Positions 5,902 through 57,971 of a stretch of 64,000 bases of DNA are shown here, piece after piece. The notes under the pieces are model-generated. The model saw only the letters and a list, made by a program, of their open reading frames with translations, was not told the DNA's origin and did no database searches. The first letter of the stretch is position 1, and each line of letters starts with the position of its first letter. A program made the position numbers and the translations under genes. The DNA is taken from the IMG/VR virus record IMGVR_UViG_3300046692_000091, positions 1 through 64,000 of that record. One strand, 5' to 3'.

Positions 5902-5942
5902 GATTTAAAACGATTACAGGGCTATATTACTACAGTGATAAT
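5902..5942 (+). promoter_or_regulatory. Early promoter
   Basis: GATTTAAAA...GCTATATTACTACAGTGATAAT; core at 5923-5930. Confidence 0.85.
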
Positions 5943-28033: not shown

Positions 28034-30250
28034 ATGAATCTCGATTCACTGTTTAAACATAATGCCCAGAAGCAATACACCCGCTTCTCGATGGAAGACT
28101 TCCTCGGCGCACTGGAAGCAGAACAGAACTACGGCGACAGCGTTCTGGCTAAAGGTAAAGACCTGGTTGGTTTCATTAGCCAAGAAAACTTCGGTGACAT
28201 CTCGGAAGTCCAACGCGGCACCGCTGGTCAAATGTATACCGACATCGGTACTACCATGAAGAAGTTCGGTTTCGAACACTTCAAAGAAGGCCGTGGCTAC
28301 ATCACCGAGAACCAACAGCGCGCTGCTACAGTAGCTGCTATTGCATGTGCTGATCCAGAAGCTTACAAACGCGCTCTGCGTGCTGTAGCTAAAGAAGTCA
28401 TTTCCAACGAAGACAACGTTTACAACGTACGTCACGAATTCGGCGGTCCTGCTGGTGCTCTGCAAGTATTCCAAGACCACCTGGGTCTGGAAAACTACAA
28501 CGAAAAATCTCAACGTGACTTCCGCGTCGTAACTGTTGGTTACAACCTCGAAGCTTCCCGTCAGGATGAGTTCGCTGAACGTCTGTACCCTACTACCGTT
28601 ATCAACCCAGTTGAAGGTGGTGTTGTTCAGGTTCTTCCTTACATCGCTGTAATGAAAGACGTCTACCACGCTGTATCGGGTGCCAAACTGGCAAACGCAG
28701 AAGTAAACATGGTAGAAGCATACCGTGACCCTTCGATCCTGGATGACAACTGCACCGACCTGATCCCTGCTGTTGATCCAGATGGTACCAACCTGAAGTT
28801 CTTCACTGATCCTGCTCTGGTTCCACATCACGTTGTTACCAACGAACAGAACATGTCGGTTACCACTGGTCCTCTGCGTCCAAACGTTAAGATCGACCTG
28901 ATGGGTAACTCGAACGCCAACCTGCTGATCAACAAAGGCATGCTGGACATTTCTGATACCATCGATCCAAGTGGTCGTCTGAAAGCTCTGTACGTCAAGT
29001 TCGATGGCAAAGTAATCCGTTTCGTTGTTGACCGTCTGCCTACCGCTGTGTTCCAGCCTGGTCTGGTTGGTGATACTCGTCAAGCTAAACTGGACTTCGT
29101 AACTGACGACCTGGTTGTTGGTGCTGACACCAAAGCAATCGACGGTTCGATCTCTGCTAACATGCAGGAACTGGTTAACCGTAAGTGGACTGCACGTGTA
29201 AGCGTATCGTTCAGCGGTCATGTATCCACTTCCCGTGGTGATGCTCGTTACGGCGCTGCTGGTATCGAAATCGACCGTATCGTCGACGAAGACCGTAAGC
29301 TGATCTCGATCGAATCCGGTGACGGTGCTGATCTGGTTGCTGCTATCGGCGATCTGGAAGTTGTAGGTTACGACCTGGACGTTAAGTTCACCAACACTAA
29401 CCGCCGTCAGCGTGGTCACCTGTTGCAAACTCGCGCTATCCAGTTCCGTCACCCAATCCCGATGCACGCTCCGGTTACCCTGCCAATGTCCACCATGGAC
29501 GAGCAAGGCCCAGGCGACGTCGTTAAGGCGCTGACTGTTAACACCAACATCCGTAACAGCAACAACGCTGTTAAACGTCTGTTGAACTACCTGGCACAAC
29601 TGAAAGAAGTTGTTGGTAATGGTTACGACCGTCCTAAGTTCGGCGCTGTTGAAGGTGCTCTGAGCATCATGATGCGTCCAACCTACCGTGAAGGTTCGTT
29701 GCACCTGCCTGACCACATCGACACCCTGAAGTCTCAGGATCGCTGGCAGGACGTTTGCAGCACCATCTTGAACTTCGCTAAAGGTATCCTGTTCCCAGCA
29801 TACCGCGAGTCCAACATCGAAGCTGCTTTCCGTGTGATCTCGGGTAACCAAGACGAGAAGCCAATGTTCATCTTCGCTACCGACAAAGAAATCGGTAACT
29901 ACCTGATGACTCAAGGCGACGACCGTACCCTGGGCGCAATCCTCGAGTACGACCTGGTAACTACCAACAACGAACTGTTCGATGGTAAACTGGTAATCGT
30001 TCCTACTCGTAAGAACCCAACCGAAAACGACATCCTGTCCTTCGGCCAGTTCTTCTACGTATCGACCGTCATCGCTGACCTGCCTATCACCCGTGGTGGC
30101 AACCAAGTGACTCGTGAGATCGCAGCTGTTCCGTTCAACCTGCACGTGAACAACATCCCATTCGCAATCAACCTGACCATCACTGGTCTGGAAGAAGTGA
30201 TGGGCAAATCGCAGTGGAACAAACCACTGATCGATGCTATCTCTGCTTGA
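28034..30250 (+). CDS. Major capsid protein (phiKZ gp120-like)
   Basis: 738 aa, extreme high-expression codon bias, AAGGA RBS, (S/A/G)xE prohead-protease sites in the N-terminal region (SME, ALE, SQE, GLE153), position after DnaB/gp119. Confidence 0.9.
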   Translation: MNLDSLFKHNAQKQYTRFSMEDFLGALEAEQNYGDSVLAKGKDLVGFISQENFGDISEVQRGTAGQMYTDIGTTMKKFGFEHFKEGRGYITENQQRAATVAAIACADPEAYKRALRAVAKEVISNEDNVYNVRHEFGGPAGALQVFQDHLGLENYNEKSQRDFRVVTVGYNLEASRQDEFAERLYPTTVINPVEGGVVQVLPYIAVMKDVYHAVSGAKLANAEVNMVEAYRDPSILDDNCTDLIPAVDPDGTNLKFFTDPALVPHHVVTNEQNMSVTTGPLRPNVKIDLMGNSNANLLINKGMLDISDTIDPSGRLKALYVKFDGKVIRFVVDRLPTAVFQPGLVGDTRQAKLDFVTDDLVVGADTKAIDGSISANMQELVNRKWTARVSVSFSGHVSTSRGDARYGAAGIEIDRIVDEDRKLISIESGDGADLVAAIGDLEVVGYDLDVKFTNTNRRQRGHLLQTRAIQFRHPIPMHAPVTLPMSTMDEQGPGDVVKALTVNTNIRNSNNAVKRLLNYLAQLKEVVGNGYDRPKFGAVEGALSIMMRPTYREGSLHLPDHIDTLKSQDRWQDVCSTILNFAKGILFPAYRESNIEAAFRVISGNQDEKPMFIFATDKEIGNYLMTQGDDRTLGAILEYDLVTTNNELFDGKLVIVPTRKNPTENDILSFGQFFYVSTVIADLPITRGGNQVTREIAAVPFNLHVNNIPFAINLTITGLEEVMGKSQWNKPLIDAISA

Positions 30251-30331
30251 AGGAATCCGGGTAACATCCGTCGACTAGAAGATGGATCAATCCGGTATCT
30301 GGAAGATGGTCCCGAGAGGTACCTAGAGTAG
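30251..30331 (+). other. In-frame 26-codon read-through extension of the capsid gene: RNPGNIRRLEDGSIRYLEDGPERYLE*
   Basis: Open frame directly after TGA (context TGA-A) ending at TAG just before the terminator; 8-codon repeat with synonymous variation. Confidence 0.6.
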
Positions 30332-30335
30332 CAAA

Positions 30336-30370
30336 CATAACTGCCTCCCCTAGCGGGAGGCTTTATGCCG
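30336..30370 (+). terminator. CATAA-stem-TTATG terminator of the capsid operon
   Basis: CATAACT-GCCTCCC-CTAGC-GGGAGGC-TTTATGCCG. Confidence 0.85.
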
Positions 30371-30384
30371 TGTTAGACTGCAAT

Positions 30385-30410
30385 TAATTTCAGATCTATA
30401 TTACTGTTAT
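30385..30410 (+). promoter_or_regulatory. Early promoter of the gp121-gp122-nvRNAP operon
   Basis: TCAGATCTATATTACT; core at 30397-30404. Confidence 0.8.
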
Positions 30411-38211: not shown

Positions 38212-38640
38212 CTAGAAACTCAGTGTAACTGGGTTTGGTGGTAACCAACCGAGAGCATTGATCCGTGGAGTCAAAGTTACCGAAGTAGCTGTAGGTAGAA
38301 TAGGATCAAAGAAGAAGTCTTCTTCATAAGCCACAATGCCGTAAACATCACCGAGCATCTTTAATACATCACTCGTGTTAGCGTAGTCGCCAGGTTTACC
38401 AATCAGCTTAACGTCCTTCAAGGCCTCATCGATACGGTAACGATTGTAATAGATCACCATCGAACCTCTGATGCGGTTAGAACTAGCCTTAGCTTGGATA
38501 GTCACCCTAGCATTACATTGGTTCTGTAGCCATACCCCAGCATTAACAAAGTCAACATCAGTAACTTGGATCGGAGGAACAATGTCATGCAATGCACTGA
38601 ACTCATTTAAGAGCTTTTCTTTTGTGTCGTGTAAATACAT
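38212..38640 (-). CDS. Virion structural protein (gp126-like; YxRL-motif family)
   Basis: 142 aa; IYYNRYRI; synteny. Confidence 0.6.
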   Translation of the reverse strand: MYLHDTKEKLLNEFSALHDIVPPIQVTDVDFVNAGVWLQNQCNARVTIQAKASSNRIRGSMVIYYNRYRIDEALKDVKLIGKPGDYANTSDVLKMLGDVYGIVAYEEDFFFDPILPTATSVTLTPRINALGWLPPNPVTLSF

Positions 38641-38647
38641 GTCAACC

Positions 38648-39523
38648 TCAATCGTAGTGCAGGCGTAAGAAACCCGTCATGTTGGAAGTTAGATTACCGA
38701 GTTCCAATACTAGTACCCGATAGAAGTCAGAACGAGATGTCCACTTCGGTATAGTCGCCCCATTATAGAGAACCTTACAATGCTTCTCGCCATCTACCAA
38801 TGAATGAACAATGTTGTTAGCTGAAACAACACTCTGGCATTGGAACTTAATACCCGAAGTCTGGAATAACGGATTCAGTAGTTGCTCAGGATTGTGGTAC
38901 AACCCAACTGGAATGTCTTTAAGACTATCCCGATACTTACTGAAATCATAACCACTCATGTAGTAGTCGCCATTGATCTTAGTCGCATCGGGCTTCACTA
39001 CTGCATTGGGAAACTCATTAACTGGGGTGGTGAGCGTGGAGATATCAATCTTAGCGGTGTTCGTTAGACGCACCTTTAAGAAACCCACGAACCGGAGAGA
39101 CCGATCGTCAGCCTGGATATTGAAATCGTTTTCACCAATTGCACTGAAGTGATCGAATGTCTGATGCACGAAGTCATCTACCTCGAACACAATCTCATTG
39201 CGTGTACCAAGCTTCTTCAGGATATCGAATGTAGTAATCGGAAGCGTTAAGCCACGGATATCTACAGCGAATGTATTACGGAAGAATTCGGTGCAGTTCA
39301 ACCGATCGTAAGTAAATACCGTTTCGGTAATCTTCGGCATCCTGTTGACTGGGTTAGCGGATCGATTAGGGATGATCTCAATCTGAGTCAGTTTAGGACC
39401 CAGTTTCGTCATCTCTTTCAACTTCGCAATACCGGGTTGGAGTTGGAAGTTATATTTGTCGTTGATCATGTCACAAATAGCTTGCCATGATCCTACCTTG
39501 AGGTAGTCGCGTGTGATATACAT
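38648..39523 (-). CDS. Virion structural protein (gp127-like)
   Basis: 291 aa; FTYDRLN; synteny. Confidence 0.6.
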   Translation of the reverse strand: MYITRDYLKVGSWQAICDMINDKYNFQLQPGIAKLKEMTKLGPKLTQIEIIPNRSANPVNRMPKITETVFTYDRLNCTEFFRNTFAVDIRGLTLPITTFDILKKLGTRNEIVFEVDDFVHQTFDHFSAIGENDFNIQADDRSLRFVGFLKVRLTNTAKIDISTLTTPVNEFPNAVVKPDATKINGDYYMSGYDFSKYRDSLKDIPVGLYHNPEQLLNPLFQTSGIKFQCQSVVSANNIVHSLVDGEKHCKVLYNGATIPKWTSRSDFYRVLVLELGNLTSNMTGFLRLHYD

Positions 39524-39532
39524 CTGATCACC

Positions 39533-54990: not shown

Positions 54991-55632
54991 ATGCTTAAGA
55001 TGCCGGAGAACTCAGAACCGTTTAAGATTCTGTCTCTAGACCCTGGCTCTTCGCATCTTGGAGTTGCCATACTACTCGACTTGTTAGATGGTTCTGATGT
55101 AACAATTGATGACTCCTTCACTGTACACCTGAAAGACACCTGCCCAGAATATGCTGAGCTAGGTGATCTGCATGGTAACCGTGTAATACGCTTGATGCAA
55201 CTCGGGGATGCTGTACTAAACCTCGTGAGAACGCACAGGCCACACGCGGTGATTGTGGAGGCTAACTACTTAGGTCGTTTCGCTACCGCCTTCGCAGCGC
55301 TCGTAGAATGCGTTGCGATGGTTCGTAGTGCTGTGTATATGTACGACCCTTTTATGCCACTCTACCAAGTAGATCCTTCAACCGCGAAGATCAATGCTGG
55401 TATGGAACGTATTAAAGGAACTGACAAGGAAGATGTCCGTCGTGCAATGAGAAAGCGTAAAGGCATTGTGTGGAATGTTAATCTAGAAGAACTAGACGAA
55501 CACAGTGTCGATGCATGTGCTATTGGCATGTATTGCGCGGATCACATTACACCTAGGGTAATGCCCGCTGAACCTATCAAGAAGATCAAGGTGAAGAAGG
55601 ACCGTAAGCGGAGAAGAGGTAAGAGACGATGA
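54991..55632 (+). CDS. ruvC: RuvC-like Holliday junction resolvase
   Basis: ILSLDPGSSHLG, VIVE, DEHSVDACAIG acidic catalytic motifs; basic C-tail. Confidence 0.85.
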   Translation: MLKMPENSEPFKILSLDPGSSHLGVAILLDLLDGSDVTIDDSFTVHLKDTCPEYAELGDLHGNRVIRLMQLGDAVLNLVRTHRPHAVIVEANYLGRFATAFAALVECVAMVRSAVYMYDPFMPLYQVDPSTAKINAGMERIKGTDKEDVRRAMRKRKGIVWNVNLEELDEHSVDACAIGMYCADHITPRVMPAEPIKKIKVKKDRKRRRGKRR

Positions 55633-56138
55633 ATTTTTTCAAAGGTCTGCAATGGTTTGAATGGCTCCTGATTGGTATCGTAGTTACGATGCTCGGAGTC
55701 TCGTATTTACTCTGGAACAAATACGATGAACGTACTGAACAAATCGGCGGTATTAAAGTCGAGAACAGTGTGCTCACGGAGACGGTGAAATATAAAGATC
55801 AGTCCGCTACCATCTCGGACCAGGTTGTCGCTGAATTTGTTCAGGAGAAAGAAGATGTGAAGGCAGAGCTGGAACAGTCACGTGAAGGAGTGATTGATGA
55901 CTACATTAACATGGCAACAGCCCCAACGGTTGCGCCCGCCGCGACTGTCGTGGACGTCCCTAAAGCAAAGGTTACAACGAGGCCAAAAGCAACTCAAACT
56001 AGGCCCACCTCCGAAGTATCTGATGCTACTGGTGCTAGTGATCGCATTAGCCTCTTGGCTAACCGGATGCACGAGCACTACTGCGCAGCTGCCCCAGAGC
56101 GTGGTGTCGGCTGCAATGCCGTCCGTACTAACCAATGA
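55629..56138 (+). CDS. Putative i-spanin (Rz-like)
   Basis: N-terminal TM WLLIGIVVTMLGVSYLLW, coiled coil, single C-proximal Cys pair; overlaps a lipoprotein gene. Confidence 0.7.
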   Translation: MNFFKGLQWFEWLLIGIVVTMLGVSYLLWNKYDERTEQIGGIKVENSVLTETVKYKDQSATISDQVVAEFVQEKEDVKAELEQSREGVIDDYINMATAPTVAPAATVVDVPKAKVTTRPKATQTRPTSEVSDATGASDRISLLANRMHEHYCAAAPERGVGCNAVRTNQ

Positions 56139-56373
56139 GTGTTACGTTTCTCCGTCCCCTACTGTCGAAGATATTCTTAACGCTCCACAGCGTTATCGTG
56201 TAGCCGGTAAGATGTCGGACTGGGAAGCTCGTTTCCTGTTGATGTCTGATCAATGGCTCCTACAAACTGACGCACTTGGTGTATGTAATACACAGGTACG
56301 CAAATCACGTGAGTGGGTAAACAAACATCGTGGTTTGGAGAAGCCAAATGAAAATCTCGGAAATCCTGAATGA
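56023..56373 (+). CDS. Putative o-spanin lipoprotein (Rz1-like), overlapping the i-spanin in another frame
   Basis: MLLVLVIALASWLTG|C lipobox; true start at 56023, not 55894. Confidence 0.75.
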   Translation: MLLVLVIALASWLTGCTSTTAQLPQSVVSAAMPSVLTNECYVSPSPTVEDILNAPQRYRVAGKMSDWEARFLLMSDQWLLQTDALGVCNTQVRKSREWVNKHRGLEKPNENLGNPE

Positions 56374-56749
56374 GATCGACCAGAGTCCGATTTCCTCTCA
56401 CTCAACTGCAGCATTAATGATCGGTTATCTGAACAGTGAATTAACACTGGTTGGAGAAACCGCATTGACTTCGAGCTCTACGGGTGCAGAAGCCATTGCT
56501 GCAATCTACAAAACCCCACGTGAAAAACAAGATGTTATTTTCCAGAAGGACTTCACGTCTATTCGGAAGAAAGACAGTTACAAGTTCACGGTATTATCTC
56601 TGGCCGTATTGGCAGTGGTAGCGGGAGCAGGCTTCGCAGGAAGTGTAGCTAAGTTAGAAGGTGAGGCAGCAGCAGGTGTAACAGACGTGTTTAAAGTTCT
56701 GATCACCGGCCTGTTTGAAATTGCGAAAATGATGATTTCAGGTCAATAA
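56348..56749 (+). CDS. Membrane protein, holin/antiholin candidate
   Basis: C-terminal hydrophobic helices; located between spanins and endolysin. Confidence 0.4.
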   Translation: MKISEILNEIDQSPISSHSTAALMIGYLNSELTLVGETALTSSSTGAEAIAAIYKTPREKQDVIFQKDFTSIRKKDSYKFTVLSLAVLAVVAGAGFAGSVAKLEGEAAAGVTDVFKVLITGLFEIAKMMISGQ

Positions 56750-56752
56750 AAA

Positions 56753-56790
56753 CATACTGTCCGTCCCATTAAGGGACGGACTTTATTATG
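56753..56790 (+). terminator. CATA-stem-TATG terminator
   Basis: GTCCGTCCC-ATTAA-GGGACGGAC-TTTATTATG. Confidence 0.75.
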
Positions 56791-56836
56791 CTATGTGGAT
56801 TAATCAACTTTGTAACCACAGGACCGAGGTTTAAAC

Positions 56837-57376
56837 ATGATCACTACAGATCGTTTCCCGTATGACATGCCTTCCCGCGACGCGCTCGTGGAACAGGTGA
56901 ACCGTGACTTGCAACGGAACTACAAACCGAACCAAGTTAGTTTTGAAGACATGTTCTTTGCCCCTCTGCCTGCTATCCCTGGCCGTACGTTTATCGAGAT
57001 GACTAGTCGCCTTACAGGCCTAAAGGAATTCTTTGTATATCGTCGGTTAGATCTGGCGAATCCTAAGGCACTGGGTACAAGCACTCGCATTAAGGTATTG
57101 GGTCGTCCGACTCCAGCCAGTATTGCAAACGAAATCAATCGTAGCCGTAAGATGACATTCGGCCCAGATGACCTTTCGTTCTCAACAGTTGTTATTAACA
57201 ACTCTGAGGAAACATTCGTCTATCGCTTGAAAGCGATGACAGGCAGCTACGCATACTTCGGTGAAACAGATGTTATCGTTGAAGTGTTAGAAGCTAATCC
57301 GTATGCACGTTATCTCGAAGACGGTGATGCTCGGTTGATGGAAACCGGTGACATTCGTGAACTCGAACACGTCTGA
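56837..57376 (+). CDS. Putative virion protein (gp143-like) with YxRL domain and C-terminal RxLEDG repeat
   Basis: VYRRLDL; ends NPYARYLEDGDARLMETGDIRELEHV. Confidence 0.65.
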   Translation: MITTDRFPYDMPSRDALVEQVNRDLQRNYKPNQVSFEDMFFAPLPAIPGRTFIEMTSRLTGLKEFFVYRRLDLANPKALGTSTRIKVLGRPTPASIANEINRSRKMTFGPDDLSFSTVVINNSEETFVYRLKAMTGSYAYFGETDVIVEVLEANPYARYLEDGDARLMETGDIRELEHV

Positions 57377-57386
57377 GGTAAATGAC

Positions 57387-57971
57387 ATGGCTACTCAAAA
57401 CGCTATACTCGATTCTATTCCCTTACCAAAAGCGAATAAGTCTCGTGCAGCAGCTATGCCAACCCTAGAAGCTATTGGCAAGATTAGCGGTATGTCTCCG
57501 ACTATACTGGCTACCTTCGCTTCGATTGAGTCTGGGTTTGACTATACTGTCAAAGCATCGACATCAAGTGCAACTGGTTGGTTTCAACATCTGAATAAAA
57601 CTTGGGATGATATCCTGGCGTTAACTAATGCCAAGTACAGTCTTAAGGATGATGCTCAGCGTGGTCTCCGGTTAGATCCTCGGGCTAATGGCCTGATGGG
57701 TGCAGAACTGTTGAAAGACAACGCTCGCATTCTTCGGAGTGGTCTGGGTCGTGAGCCTAACGATACGGAATTGTACGCCGCACACTTCTTCGGAGTGGGT
57801 GCAGCTAAGAAGTTCTTGCTAGCTGATCGTAACGCTTTGGGTAAGGACCTGTTCCCTAAACAAGCTGAAGCTAACATTGGTATCTTCTACGCTCGCGATA
57901 AGAAGACAGCTCTGACAATCGCACAGATTATCGACTTGTTAGATTCTAAAGTCGCCAAGCACCGCGGTTGA
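57387..57971 (+). CDS. Lytic transglycosylase endolysin, phiKZ gp144 (KZ144)-like catalytic domain only
   Basis: IPLPKANKSRAAA, TFASIESGFD (catalytic Glu), TSSATGWFQ, LYAAHFFG closely parallel KZ144 as recalled; start after GAGGT. Confidence 0.9.
   Translation: MATQNAILDSIPLPKANKSRAAAMPTLEAIGKISGMSPTILATFASIESGFDYTVKASTSSATGWFQHLNKTWDDILALTNAKYSLKDDAQRGLRLDPRANGLMGAELLKDNARILRSGLGREPNDTELYAAHFFGVGAAKKFLLADRNALGKDLFPKQAEANIGIFYARDKKTALTIAQIIDLLDSKVAKHRG

Follow-up and report, generated by a model that had tools for sequence, protein, structure and literature searches.

A conserved in-frame extension follows the UGA stop of the major capsid gene in phiKZ-like Pseudomonas jumbo phages, suggesting a read-through capsid tail

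Introduction

Does the major capsid gene of a phiKZ-like jumbo phage really end at its stop codon? The question is raised by a 64,000-nucleotide stretch of DNA (the window; positions 1 to 64,000 of IMG/VR record IMGVR_UViG_3300046692_000091), in which an initial annotation pointed to an open frame of 26 codons beyond the TGA of the capsid gene, with a repeated (RxLEDGxx)n motif shared with another putative virion protein. It proposed that read-through of the stop places a docking peptide on a fraction of capsid subunits, or alternatively that the TGA is a recent nonsense change that trimmed an ancestral tail. Here we ask whether the extension is there, whether it is conserved as protein, what it resembles, and how it might be expressed.

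Results

The capsid stop codon and its in-frame extension

The major capsid protein gene (phiKZ gp120 homologue; Pfam PhiKZ_MCP, 749 bits; PHROG 3231, major head protein) occupies 28034–30250 on the plus strand and comprises 738 codons followed by TGA at 30248–30250. We find that frame 0 continues with RNPGNIRRLEDGSIRYLEDGPERYLE (30251–30328), an arrangement of the form (RxLEDGxx)2-RxLE, and closes with a second stop, TAG, at 30329–30331. The synonymous differences between the repeats are as first listed, and the extension contains no in-frame ATG, GTG or TTG. The original observation is thus confirmed, apart from one detail: the extension was said to end 4 nt before the terminator, but the stem of the terminator starts at 30343, leaving a gap of 11 nt after the TAG. 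This terminator (30343–30369, plus strand) is a GC-rich hairpin with a 7-bp stem and a 5-nt loop, followed by TTTATGCC, and the hairpin plus GCTTTATG is conserved in relatives. Beyond it, at 30392–30404 (plus strand), lies AGATCTATATTAC, a conserved promoter-like motif for the next gene which bounds the recoding unit but is not part of it; this motif is invariant in a five-phage alignment, and nine copies with up to 2 mismatches are found in the window, against 1.5 expected.

The stop context itself (30248–30251, TGA-A), a leaky one, is the proposed read-through site, whereas the genome otherwise prefers TAA and TGA-T. Across the 71 ORFs of the window the stops are TAA in 40, TGA in 21 and TAG in 10, and TGA-T is the commonest TGA context (11 of 21); the only other two TGA-A stops lie in ATGA gene overlaps.

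The stop and the extension are conserved together

We next asked whether relatives share this arrangement, and find it in all 22 distinct relatives that carry the motif, including phiKZ, PhiPA3, 201phi2-1, Phabio and Noxifer. These sequences span the listed genera Phikzvirus, Tepukevirus, Pawinskivirus, Phabiovirus, Serwervirus, Noxifervirus and Miltoncavirus, plus unclassified isolates and metagenomic lineages, and TGA plus the in-frame RxLEDG tail is conserved from this phage to phiKZ and Noxifer, which is 63% identical over the last 250 capsid residues. In every one the capsid stop is TGA, with a fourth base of A in 18, G in 3, C in 1 and T in none, followed by 24–30 in-frame codons with the motif and then a stop (TAA, TAG or TGA) just before the terminator. 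Of 13 relatives without the motif, 11 end in TAA and 2 in TGA (Fisher p 2e-7, or 1e-4 after collapsing lineages). On the capsid-protein tree the trait requires at least 3–4 changes, and TAA lineages without the tail are nested among TGA lineages with it, so that loss of the tail went with a TGA-to-TAA switch. The tail has been lost several times, so it is dispensable in some lineages.

The pattern of conservation is that of coding sequence. In a codon alignment of 16 sequences, frame 0 has 0 stops against 22 and 12 in frames 1 and 2, and amino acid identity is 0.52 against 0.41 and 0.40. All indels are multiples of three, and the invariant Arg, Glu and Gly use 2–4 codons each, with CGT, CGG, CGA, AGG and AGA represented for Arg, all four codons for Gly and both for Glu. 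Constraint is concentrated on the R, E, D/N and G positions and is weak elsewhere; pooled pN/pS over the whole extension is 0.61, compared to 0.29 for the last 60 capsid codons.

tblastn of the phiKZ extension against 50,697 phage records finds only phiKZ-like Pseudomonas phages, with 110 places in 63 records; each phiKZ-type genome has two, of which the best lies just past the capsid gene and is unannotated, while the other is presumably gp143. No extension is found in the more distant chimalliviruses Deimos-Minion, SPN3US, FBKp24, RTH11, RP12 and pVa-21, so the device is confined to the Pseudomonas phiKZ-like clade. Among 120 capsid homologues none has a sense codon in place of the TGA and none carries the tail fused to the capsid protein; this fits a need for low copy number, but it also removes the simplest proof of translation.

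The extension matches the C-terminal tail of gp143

The match between the two tails is more than chance. In all six frames of the window, the pattern [RK]x[LMIVFYS]E[DNT]G occurs tandemly at only two places, the capsid extension and the end of the protein encoded at 56837–57376 (plus strand). The initial annotation described the latter as another virion protein sharing the motif, which is correct and can be made stronger: tblastn identifies it as the homologue of phiKZ gp143, with hits to 69 phage records, and its extreme C-terminus, NPYARYLEDGDARLMETGDIRELEHV (57296–57373), is the same 2.5-octad module. R158, R166, E169 and R174 are invariant in the family alignment. A profile built from 41 gp143-family tails matches the capsid extension end to end (E 8e-11, 38.4 bits, profile positions 1–24 aligned to extension residues 3–26) among 2395 six-frame segments, the next best of which scores E 0.65. 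The same profile matches all 22 extensions (E 2e-11 to 2e-3) and none of 39 control frames from the tail-less relatives (1.2 bits or less). The two DNA segments are only about 50% identical, so this is not a recent copy, and the NP that precedes the motif at both places is shared only within the Psa21-like clade and is not general. The tails alone match nothing in Pfam or PHROGs at E up to 10.

The remainder of the gp143 homologue (about residues 9–151) is predicted to adopt a DUF7941 fold. The Pfam DUF7941 model (PF25613) scores 21.9 bits, below its gathering cut-off of 27, although precomputed Pfam hits list PF25613 for this cluster; an AF2 model (pLDDT 84.5) matches the N-terminal domain of phiKZ gp127 (9xqd_0) in a Foldseek search, with E 1e-6 and a TM-score of 0.71 normalised to target length. 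In this monomer model the tail is ordered (pLDDT about 75) with periodic beta-bridges. The gene lies in the lysis cassette beside a homologue of the phiKZ holin gp142, identified by tblastn (56330–56749, plus strand; role from PMC12894885). Homologues of phiKZ gp126 and gp127, the other DUF7941 proteins (PMC13742148), lie at 38212–39523 on the minus strand and have no RxLEDG tail by motif scan. They were found only with the phiKZ proteins as queries, since jackhmmer with the gp143 homologue against all window ORFs found only itself.

One phage retains the gp143 tail while lacking the capsid extension, showing that the two tails are not obligate partners of each other. In sister lineages without the extension, the capsid protein often carries a long low-complexity C-terminal tail instead, which is acidic, rich in Thr and Gly, contains no repeat motif, is fused to every subunit and ends in TAA with no conserved frame downstream; the capsid C-terminus thus tolerates appendages.

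RNA-level and other features

RNAalifold gives −6.1 kcal/mol with a covariation term of −0.12, indicating no conserved structure and no conserved hairpin 3' of the UGA of the kind that a bacterial SECIS would require, and there is no Rfam match. The single-sequence fold of the window's own sequence is somewhat better than shuffles (z −1.8). No tRNA gene, and hence no suppressor tRNA, lies within the window, which covers 64 kb of an approximately 315-kb genome. The prohead protease gp175 cuts after S/A/G-x-E, and by inspection alone no conserved site of that form is seen in the tail, so the idea of a prohead-protease site was dropped on that basis. A phiKZ TnSeq data set gives gene-level counts only, in which gp143 tolerates insertions and gp120 does not, with no information for the 80-nt extension. 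No paper in the literature searched mentions read-through of this gene or the peptide strings, and no genome record searched describes it.

Discussion

Programmed read-through as the favored model

Collectively, these data give strong comparative support to the recoding part of the original proposal, and we consider the following model more likely than not. The capsid mRNA would carry a programmed, low-efficiency read-through of its UGA stop, most likely by near-cognate decoding by host tRNA-Trp, as in Qbeta, such that most ribosomes terminate to make the 738-aa protein and a small fraction continue for 26 codons to make a 765-aa isoform. The added peptide, of two and a half octad repeats, is a copy of the extreme C-terminal module of gp143, which has been reported as a virion protein and a holin regulator in phiKZ. 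In phiKZ the C-terminal arm of the capsid protein forms the central six-helix bundle of hexamers and contacts the outer protein gp244 in pentamers (PMC11297242), and a few hexamers per capsid would therefore present the module. It would then engage whatever the gp143 tail engages, which could be the DUF7941 N-terminal domain, by analogy with head-to-tail docking, or other copies of the tail through co-oligomerization; either way, gp143/DUF7941 proteins would be tethered to the capsid at low copy number.

The analysis establishes the conservation of TGA, frame and motif, the link between TGA and the presence of the tail, and the homology of the extension to the gp143 tail. That the extension is translated at all, that read-through is the means, how efficient it is, whether the tail is exposed on the capsid surface, and what it binds are inferred from sequence alone. 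The interpretation offered in the initial annotation is therefore only partly supported, since its docking peptide, or attachment code, remains an inference. The published 3.x-angstrom phiKZ capsid model stops at residue 747, which is expected for a low-occupancy tail under icosahedral averaging but lends no support, and the phiKZ structural papers do not place gp143.

Alternative explanations

The alternative that survives best, although we regard it as unlikely, is that the extension is made by read-through but that its role does not involve gp143/DUF7941. The module may bind a third partner, such as a host envelope component, the phage nucleus or PhuZ during capsid trafficking, or a chaperone or protease, or may act as a small foldon-like self-association unit between neighboring capsid subunits. 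The partner of the gp143 tail is not known, this tail persists without the capsid extension, and its ordered, periodic appearance in the AF2 monomer is compatible with an autonomous mini-fold; its size, C-terminal position and paired DG turns resemble the T4 fibritin foldon, a resemblance that is a lead only. Nothing specific speaks against this reading, but it is less economical than a link to the protein family that carries the only other copy of the module.

Less likely still is translation by a route other than near-cognate read-through, namely selenocysteine insertion, a phage-encoded opal-suppressor tRNA, or phage-induced weakening of RF2 late in infection. UGA is the codon used by all of these routes and Pseudomonas hosts have the selenocysteine machinery, but no SECIS-like hairpin follows the UGA and no tRNA gene lies in the part of the genome inspected; the tRNA sets of phiKZ and 201phi2-1 differ and are not known to include a suppressor.

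We consider it improbable that the block is a nucleic-acid element with an incidental open frame, whether a 24-nt periodic protein-binding site, an RNA structure that tunes termination or mRNA stability, or an aid to the terminator. Its position between a highly expressed gene and its terminator, the modest folding z-score and the only moderately low pN/pS are in its favor. However, conservation has three-base periodicity with Arg switching between CGN and AGR, frame 0 is open in 22 lineages, no covarying structure is found, and the same peptide is encoded at gp143 by DNA of only about 50% identity; nor does this reading give a reason for the stop to be TGA only when the block is present.

A recent nonsense change, the alternative raised in the initial annotation, is refuted by the depth of conservation, and a relic of an ancestral tailed capsid protein, cut off by a nonsense mutation and not yet decayed, is very unlikely: although an intact ancestor cannot be excluded and several lineages have lost the tail, TGA and motif are retained together across genomes that are not near-clonal, with capsid C-terminal regions only 60–75% identical and a pooled synonymous difference of about 0.45–0.55, an untranslated remnant would have accumulated stops and frame-breaking indels as frames 1 and 2 have, and where the tail is gone nothing recognizable remains and the stop is TAA in 11 of 13 cases.

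Relation to known systems

The closest parallel is the A1 protein of Qbeta, an ssRNA levivirus in which the coat gene ends in a leaky UGA, an in-frame extension follows, and a few per cent of coat subunits in the virion carry it. The Qbeta extension is about 196 aa, forms a folded domain and is needed for infection, whereas here a roughly 315-kb dsDNA jumbo phage with a T=27-type capsid encodes a 26-aa repeat peptide with no sequence relationship, the translation of which is inferred. T7/T3 gp10B, Lactobacillus phage A2 gp5B and Listeria phage PSA Cps-L are likewise minor, C-terminally extended capsid proteins of tailed dsDNA phages that are made by recoding and co-assemble with the main form, but they arise by −1 or +1 frameshifting at slippery sites into another frame, whereas this extension lies in frame 0 directly after a stop. 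In gp143 the module follows a DUF7941 domain and is made on every copy, whereas on the capsid protein it lies behind a stop codon. DUF7941 proteins are reported to assemble head-to-tail through a short peptide after the N-terminal globular domain (Goslar gp22/gp23; phiKZ gp126–gp127; PMC13742148), but the phiKZ gp127 linker proposed to dock on gp126 shows no RxLEDG motif, nor do the gp126 and gp127 homologues, and the analogy is by architecture only.

Implications

A more far-reaching possibility, which we put forward tentatively, is that phiKZ-like phages use UGA read-through to place a few copies per capsid of a peptide that mimics the gp143 module, a route that to our knowledge has not been described for tailed dsDNA phages, and that the capsid would thereby recruit or titrate gp143. 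One possible consequence is that DUF7941 host-recognition filaments are anchored on the head; another is that the number of assembled capsids feeds into lysis timing. In this reading lineages have switched the device off repeatedly by changing TGA to TAA.

phiKZ is the model nucleus-forming jumbo phage, with a capsid solved to near-atomic resolution and a proteome mapped repeatedly, yet every GenBank record inspected leaves this 80-nt stretch unannotated or covers it with a spurious ORF in the wrong frame. If the tail is translated, a recoded isoform of the most abundant virion protein has been overlooked, stop-codon read-through joins frameshifting as a way for tailed phages to set capsid isoform ratios, and there is a concrete link between the capsid and the poorly placed DUF7941/gp143 proteins, which are implicated in host recognition and lysis control. 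It would also mark a natural low-copy display site at hexamer centers that could be used for engineering phiKZ-type phages, and the repeated switching between TGA with a tail and TAA without one is a natural experiment on what the tail is worth to the phage.

The capsid 3′ end and its in-frame extension

The window, the first 64 kb of the 314,814-bp IMG/VR contig IMGVR_UViG_3300046692_000091, derives from a phiKZ-like Pseudomonas jumbo phage whose closest relatives are Psa21 (89% DNA identity at the capsid 3′ end), D6 and RVTF4; phiKZ itself is 72% identical over the same region. The ORF at 28034-30250 is the major capsid protein (Pfam PhiKZ_MCP, 749 bits) and ends in TGA at 30248-30250, followed by A. 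We find that the same frame continues as RNPGNIRRLEDGSIRYLEDGPERYLE and stops at a TAG at 30329-30331, with a 7-bp GC hairpin (30343-30361) followed by TTTATG lying 11 nt further on, and that the protein encoded at 56837-57376 ends in NPYARYLEDGDARLMETGDIRELEHV. The initial annotation, which had described a hidden capsid extension sharing a repeat motif with this second protein, is therefore correct in its observation, although it placed the terminator 4 nt after the second stop. A 699-aa ORF on the strand opposite the capsid gene (28046-30145, minus strand) is almost certainly a codon-bias artefact of this highly expressed gene.

Downstream of the capsid terminator, the motif AGATCTATATTAC (core CTATATTAC; 30392-30404) is invariant in five phages, and it occurs nine times in the window with up to two mismatches, against 1.5 expected. 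The other copies lie at 5918, 7088, 8385, 18606, 33874, 37353 and 37871 on the plus strand and at 39513-39525 on the minus strand, and by position against the ORF list most appear to fall between ORFs. The motif resembles the AT-rich early-promoter consensus of phiKZ.

The stop codon, reading frame and motif are conserved

We next extracted the capsid 3′ end from isolates and metagenomic relatives. In the window, Psa21, D6, RVTF4, phiKZ, HPP-Temi, PS119XW, Phabio, 201phi2-1 and Noxifer, the gene ends in TGA, and frame 0 continues for 24-28 codons with RxLE(D/N)Gxx-RxLEDGxx-RxLE before stopping shortly upstream of the terminator. Viktualia and PhiPA3 show the same arrangement, as do seven further distinct IMG/VR genomes and three divergent metagenomic lineages (capsid homologues P0130, P0168 and P0145). 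This gives 22 distinct sequences, all with TGA, in which the fourth base is A in 18, G in 3, C in 1 and never T. By comparison, the 71 long ORFs of the window end in TAA (40), TGA (21) or TAG (10), TGA-T is the commonest TGA context, and the only other two TGA-A stops are ATGA overlaps with the next gene. Two GenBank records annotate small "hypothetical protein" ORFs over the extension region in a different frame from the capsid gene, at 1207-1350 of the HPP-Temi sequence (L005) and 366-464 of the Viktualia sequence (L028); these look like spurious gene calls that hide the in-frame tail. In addition, several near-identical capsid homologues (P0053, P0055 and P0056) are named "virulence-associated protein VapD" by JGI, which looks like a mis-annotation of a PhiKZ_MCP protein.

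A protein-guided codon alignment of 16 lineages reveals no stop in frame 0, against 22 and 12 in frames 1 and 2, with an amino-acid identity of 0.52 in frame 0 versus 0.41 and 0.40 in the other frames. Invariant residues are encoded by several codons (R8 by CGT/AGG/CGA; R17 by CGG/CGT/AGA/CGA; G13 and G22 by all four Gly codons; E11 by GAA/GAG), and every indel is a whole number of codons. The pooled pN/pS is 0.61 for the extension, compared to 0.29 for the last 60 capsid codons; selection is real but concentrated on the R, E, D/N and G positions. No conserved RNA structure is predicted (consensus −6.1 kcal/mol, covariation −0.12), no Rfam family matches, and the window's own sequence folds only marginally better than shuffled sequences (z −1.8). 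A DNA or RNA element does not explain the pattern.

TGA is linked to the presence of the tail

Thirteen relatives lack the motif. Six are distant chimalliviruses (Deimos-Minion, SPN3US, FBKp24, RTH11, RP12 and pVa-21), while seven are metagenomic lineages that are 59-76% identical to the window over the C-terminal region of the capsid protein. Eleven of the thirteen end in TAA, and of the two with TGA, one is followed at once by TAG. Fisher's test, uncorrected for phylogeny, gives p = 2e-7, or 1e-4 after collapsing lineages. On a maximum-likelihood tree of the capsid proteins, the trait requires at least 3-4 changes, and tail-less TAA lineages (P0107 with P0137, and P0122) are nested among TGA lineages that carry the tail; each time the tail disappeared, the stop became TAA. 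Sister lineages without the read-through tail (the metagenomic relatives L038, L039, L040 and L041) carry 15-40-residue low-complexity tails fused to every capsid subunit, which are acidic or rich in Thr and Gly, for example ending in ...GGDAGGDDDTNP, and which end in TAA or in tandem stops.

This linkage is what one expects if TGA is kept only because it must be read through, and is the opposite of the recent nonsense mutation that the initial annotation had offered as an alternative. None of 120 capsid homologues has the tail fused by a sense codon, which fits a requirement for low copy number.

The tail is shared with the gp143 homologue

The protein encoded at 56837-57376 is the homologue of phiKZ gp143, and lies between the homologues of the holin gp142 and the transglycosylase gp144. 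Its AlphaFold2 model (pLDDT 84.5) has one significant structural neighbor in the PDB, chain 9xqd_0, which is phiKZ gp127 in the outer peripheral baseplate; the model therefore assigns it a predicted DUF7941 fold, although the Pfam score is below threshold. In 41 family members, the last 25 or so residues are RxLEDGxx-RLLExGxx-RELEHx, with R158, R166, E169 and R174 invariant. A profile of these tails finds the capsid extension at E = 8e-11, aligned end to end, among 2395 six-frame segments of the window, with the next best segment at E = 0.65, and it matches all 22 extensions and none of 39 control frames. A tblastn search of the phiKZ extension against 50,697 phage genomes finds only phiKZ-like Pseudomonas phages, at two places per phiKZ genome; the place just past the capsid gene is unannotated, while the second is presumably gp143. 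The two copies in the window share only about 50% DNA identity, indicating that the duplication is old and that the similarity is maintained at the protein level.

The order of the phiKZ lysis cassette appears to be kept at 54991-57971. Homologues of gp140 (54991-55533), gp142 and gp143 were identified by tblastn and a gp144-like transglycosylase by family searches, and by position alone the spanin gp141 would be the ORF at 55629-56138; the capsid-tail module is therefore shared with a gene inside the lysis cassette. The first possible start of the gp144-like ORF (GTG at 57348) overlaps the last 29 nt of the gp143-like gene (57348-57376), inside the tail-coding region, but PHROG matches begin at residue 16-22, so the true start is probably further downstream.

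Published work places these proteins in context. DUF7941 proteins, including phiKZ gp126, gp127 and gp143, are reported to form head-to-tail assemblies in which the peptide after the N-terminal domain of one protomer docks on the next, and are very abundant in Goslar virions (PMC13742148). gp143 is reported as a holin-specific lysis regulator that acts through the cytoplasmic N-terminus of gp142 (PMC12894885), and TnSeq finds it non-essential. The C-terminal arm of the phiKZ capsid protein (residues 728-747) forms a six-helix bundle at the center of each hexamer and, in pentamers, reaches the outer protein gp244 (PMC11297242). Neither these papers nor any other in the literature searched mentions read-through or the peptide.

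A proposed read-through capsid isoform

We propose that most ribosomes terminate at the UGA, while a small share insert an amino acid and add the 26-residue module. The inserted residue is probably Trp from near-cognate tRNA, by analogy with Qbeta. No tRNA gene lies in the window, the only 64 kb of the genome covered by the tRNA scan. If read-through were about 1-3%, a T=27 shell of 1620 subunits would carry about 15-50 tails, at hexamer centers and probably on the outside. Because the module is the gp143 tail, it should bind what that tail binds, which could be a DUF7941 N-terminal domain or other copies of the tail; either way, gp143/DUF7941 proteins would be linked to the head at a controlled low copy number. 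One relative keeps the gp143 tail while its capsid gene, on the same contig, ends in TAA with no extension. The gp143 tail therefore has its own partner, and the capsid tail is better seen as a mimic than as its obligate mate.

The interpretation given in the initial annotation is thus partly supported. The extension, its deep conservation, its coding signature and its match to the gp143 tail are established by the sequences themselves, and recoding is well supported by this comparative evidence; translation of the tail, and the efficiency of read-through, are inferred from sequence alone, and a docking function remains an inference that is plausible on present evidence. Recoded capsid isoforms are already known; what differs here is that the isoform would be made by stop-codon read-through in a jumbo dsDNA phage, with a tail shared with a DUF7941 lysis and virion protein.
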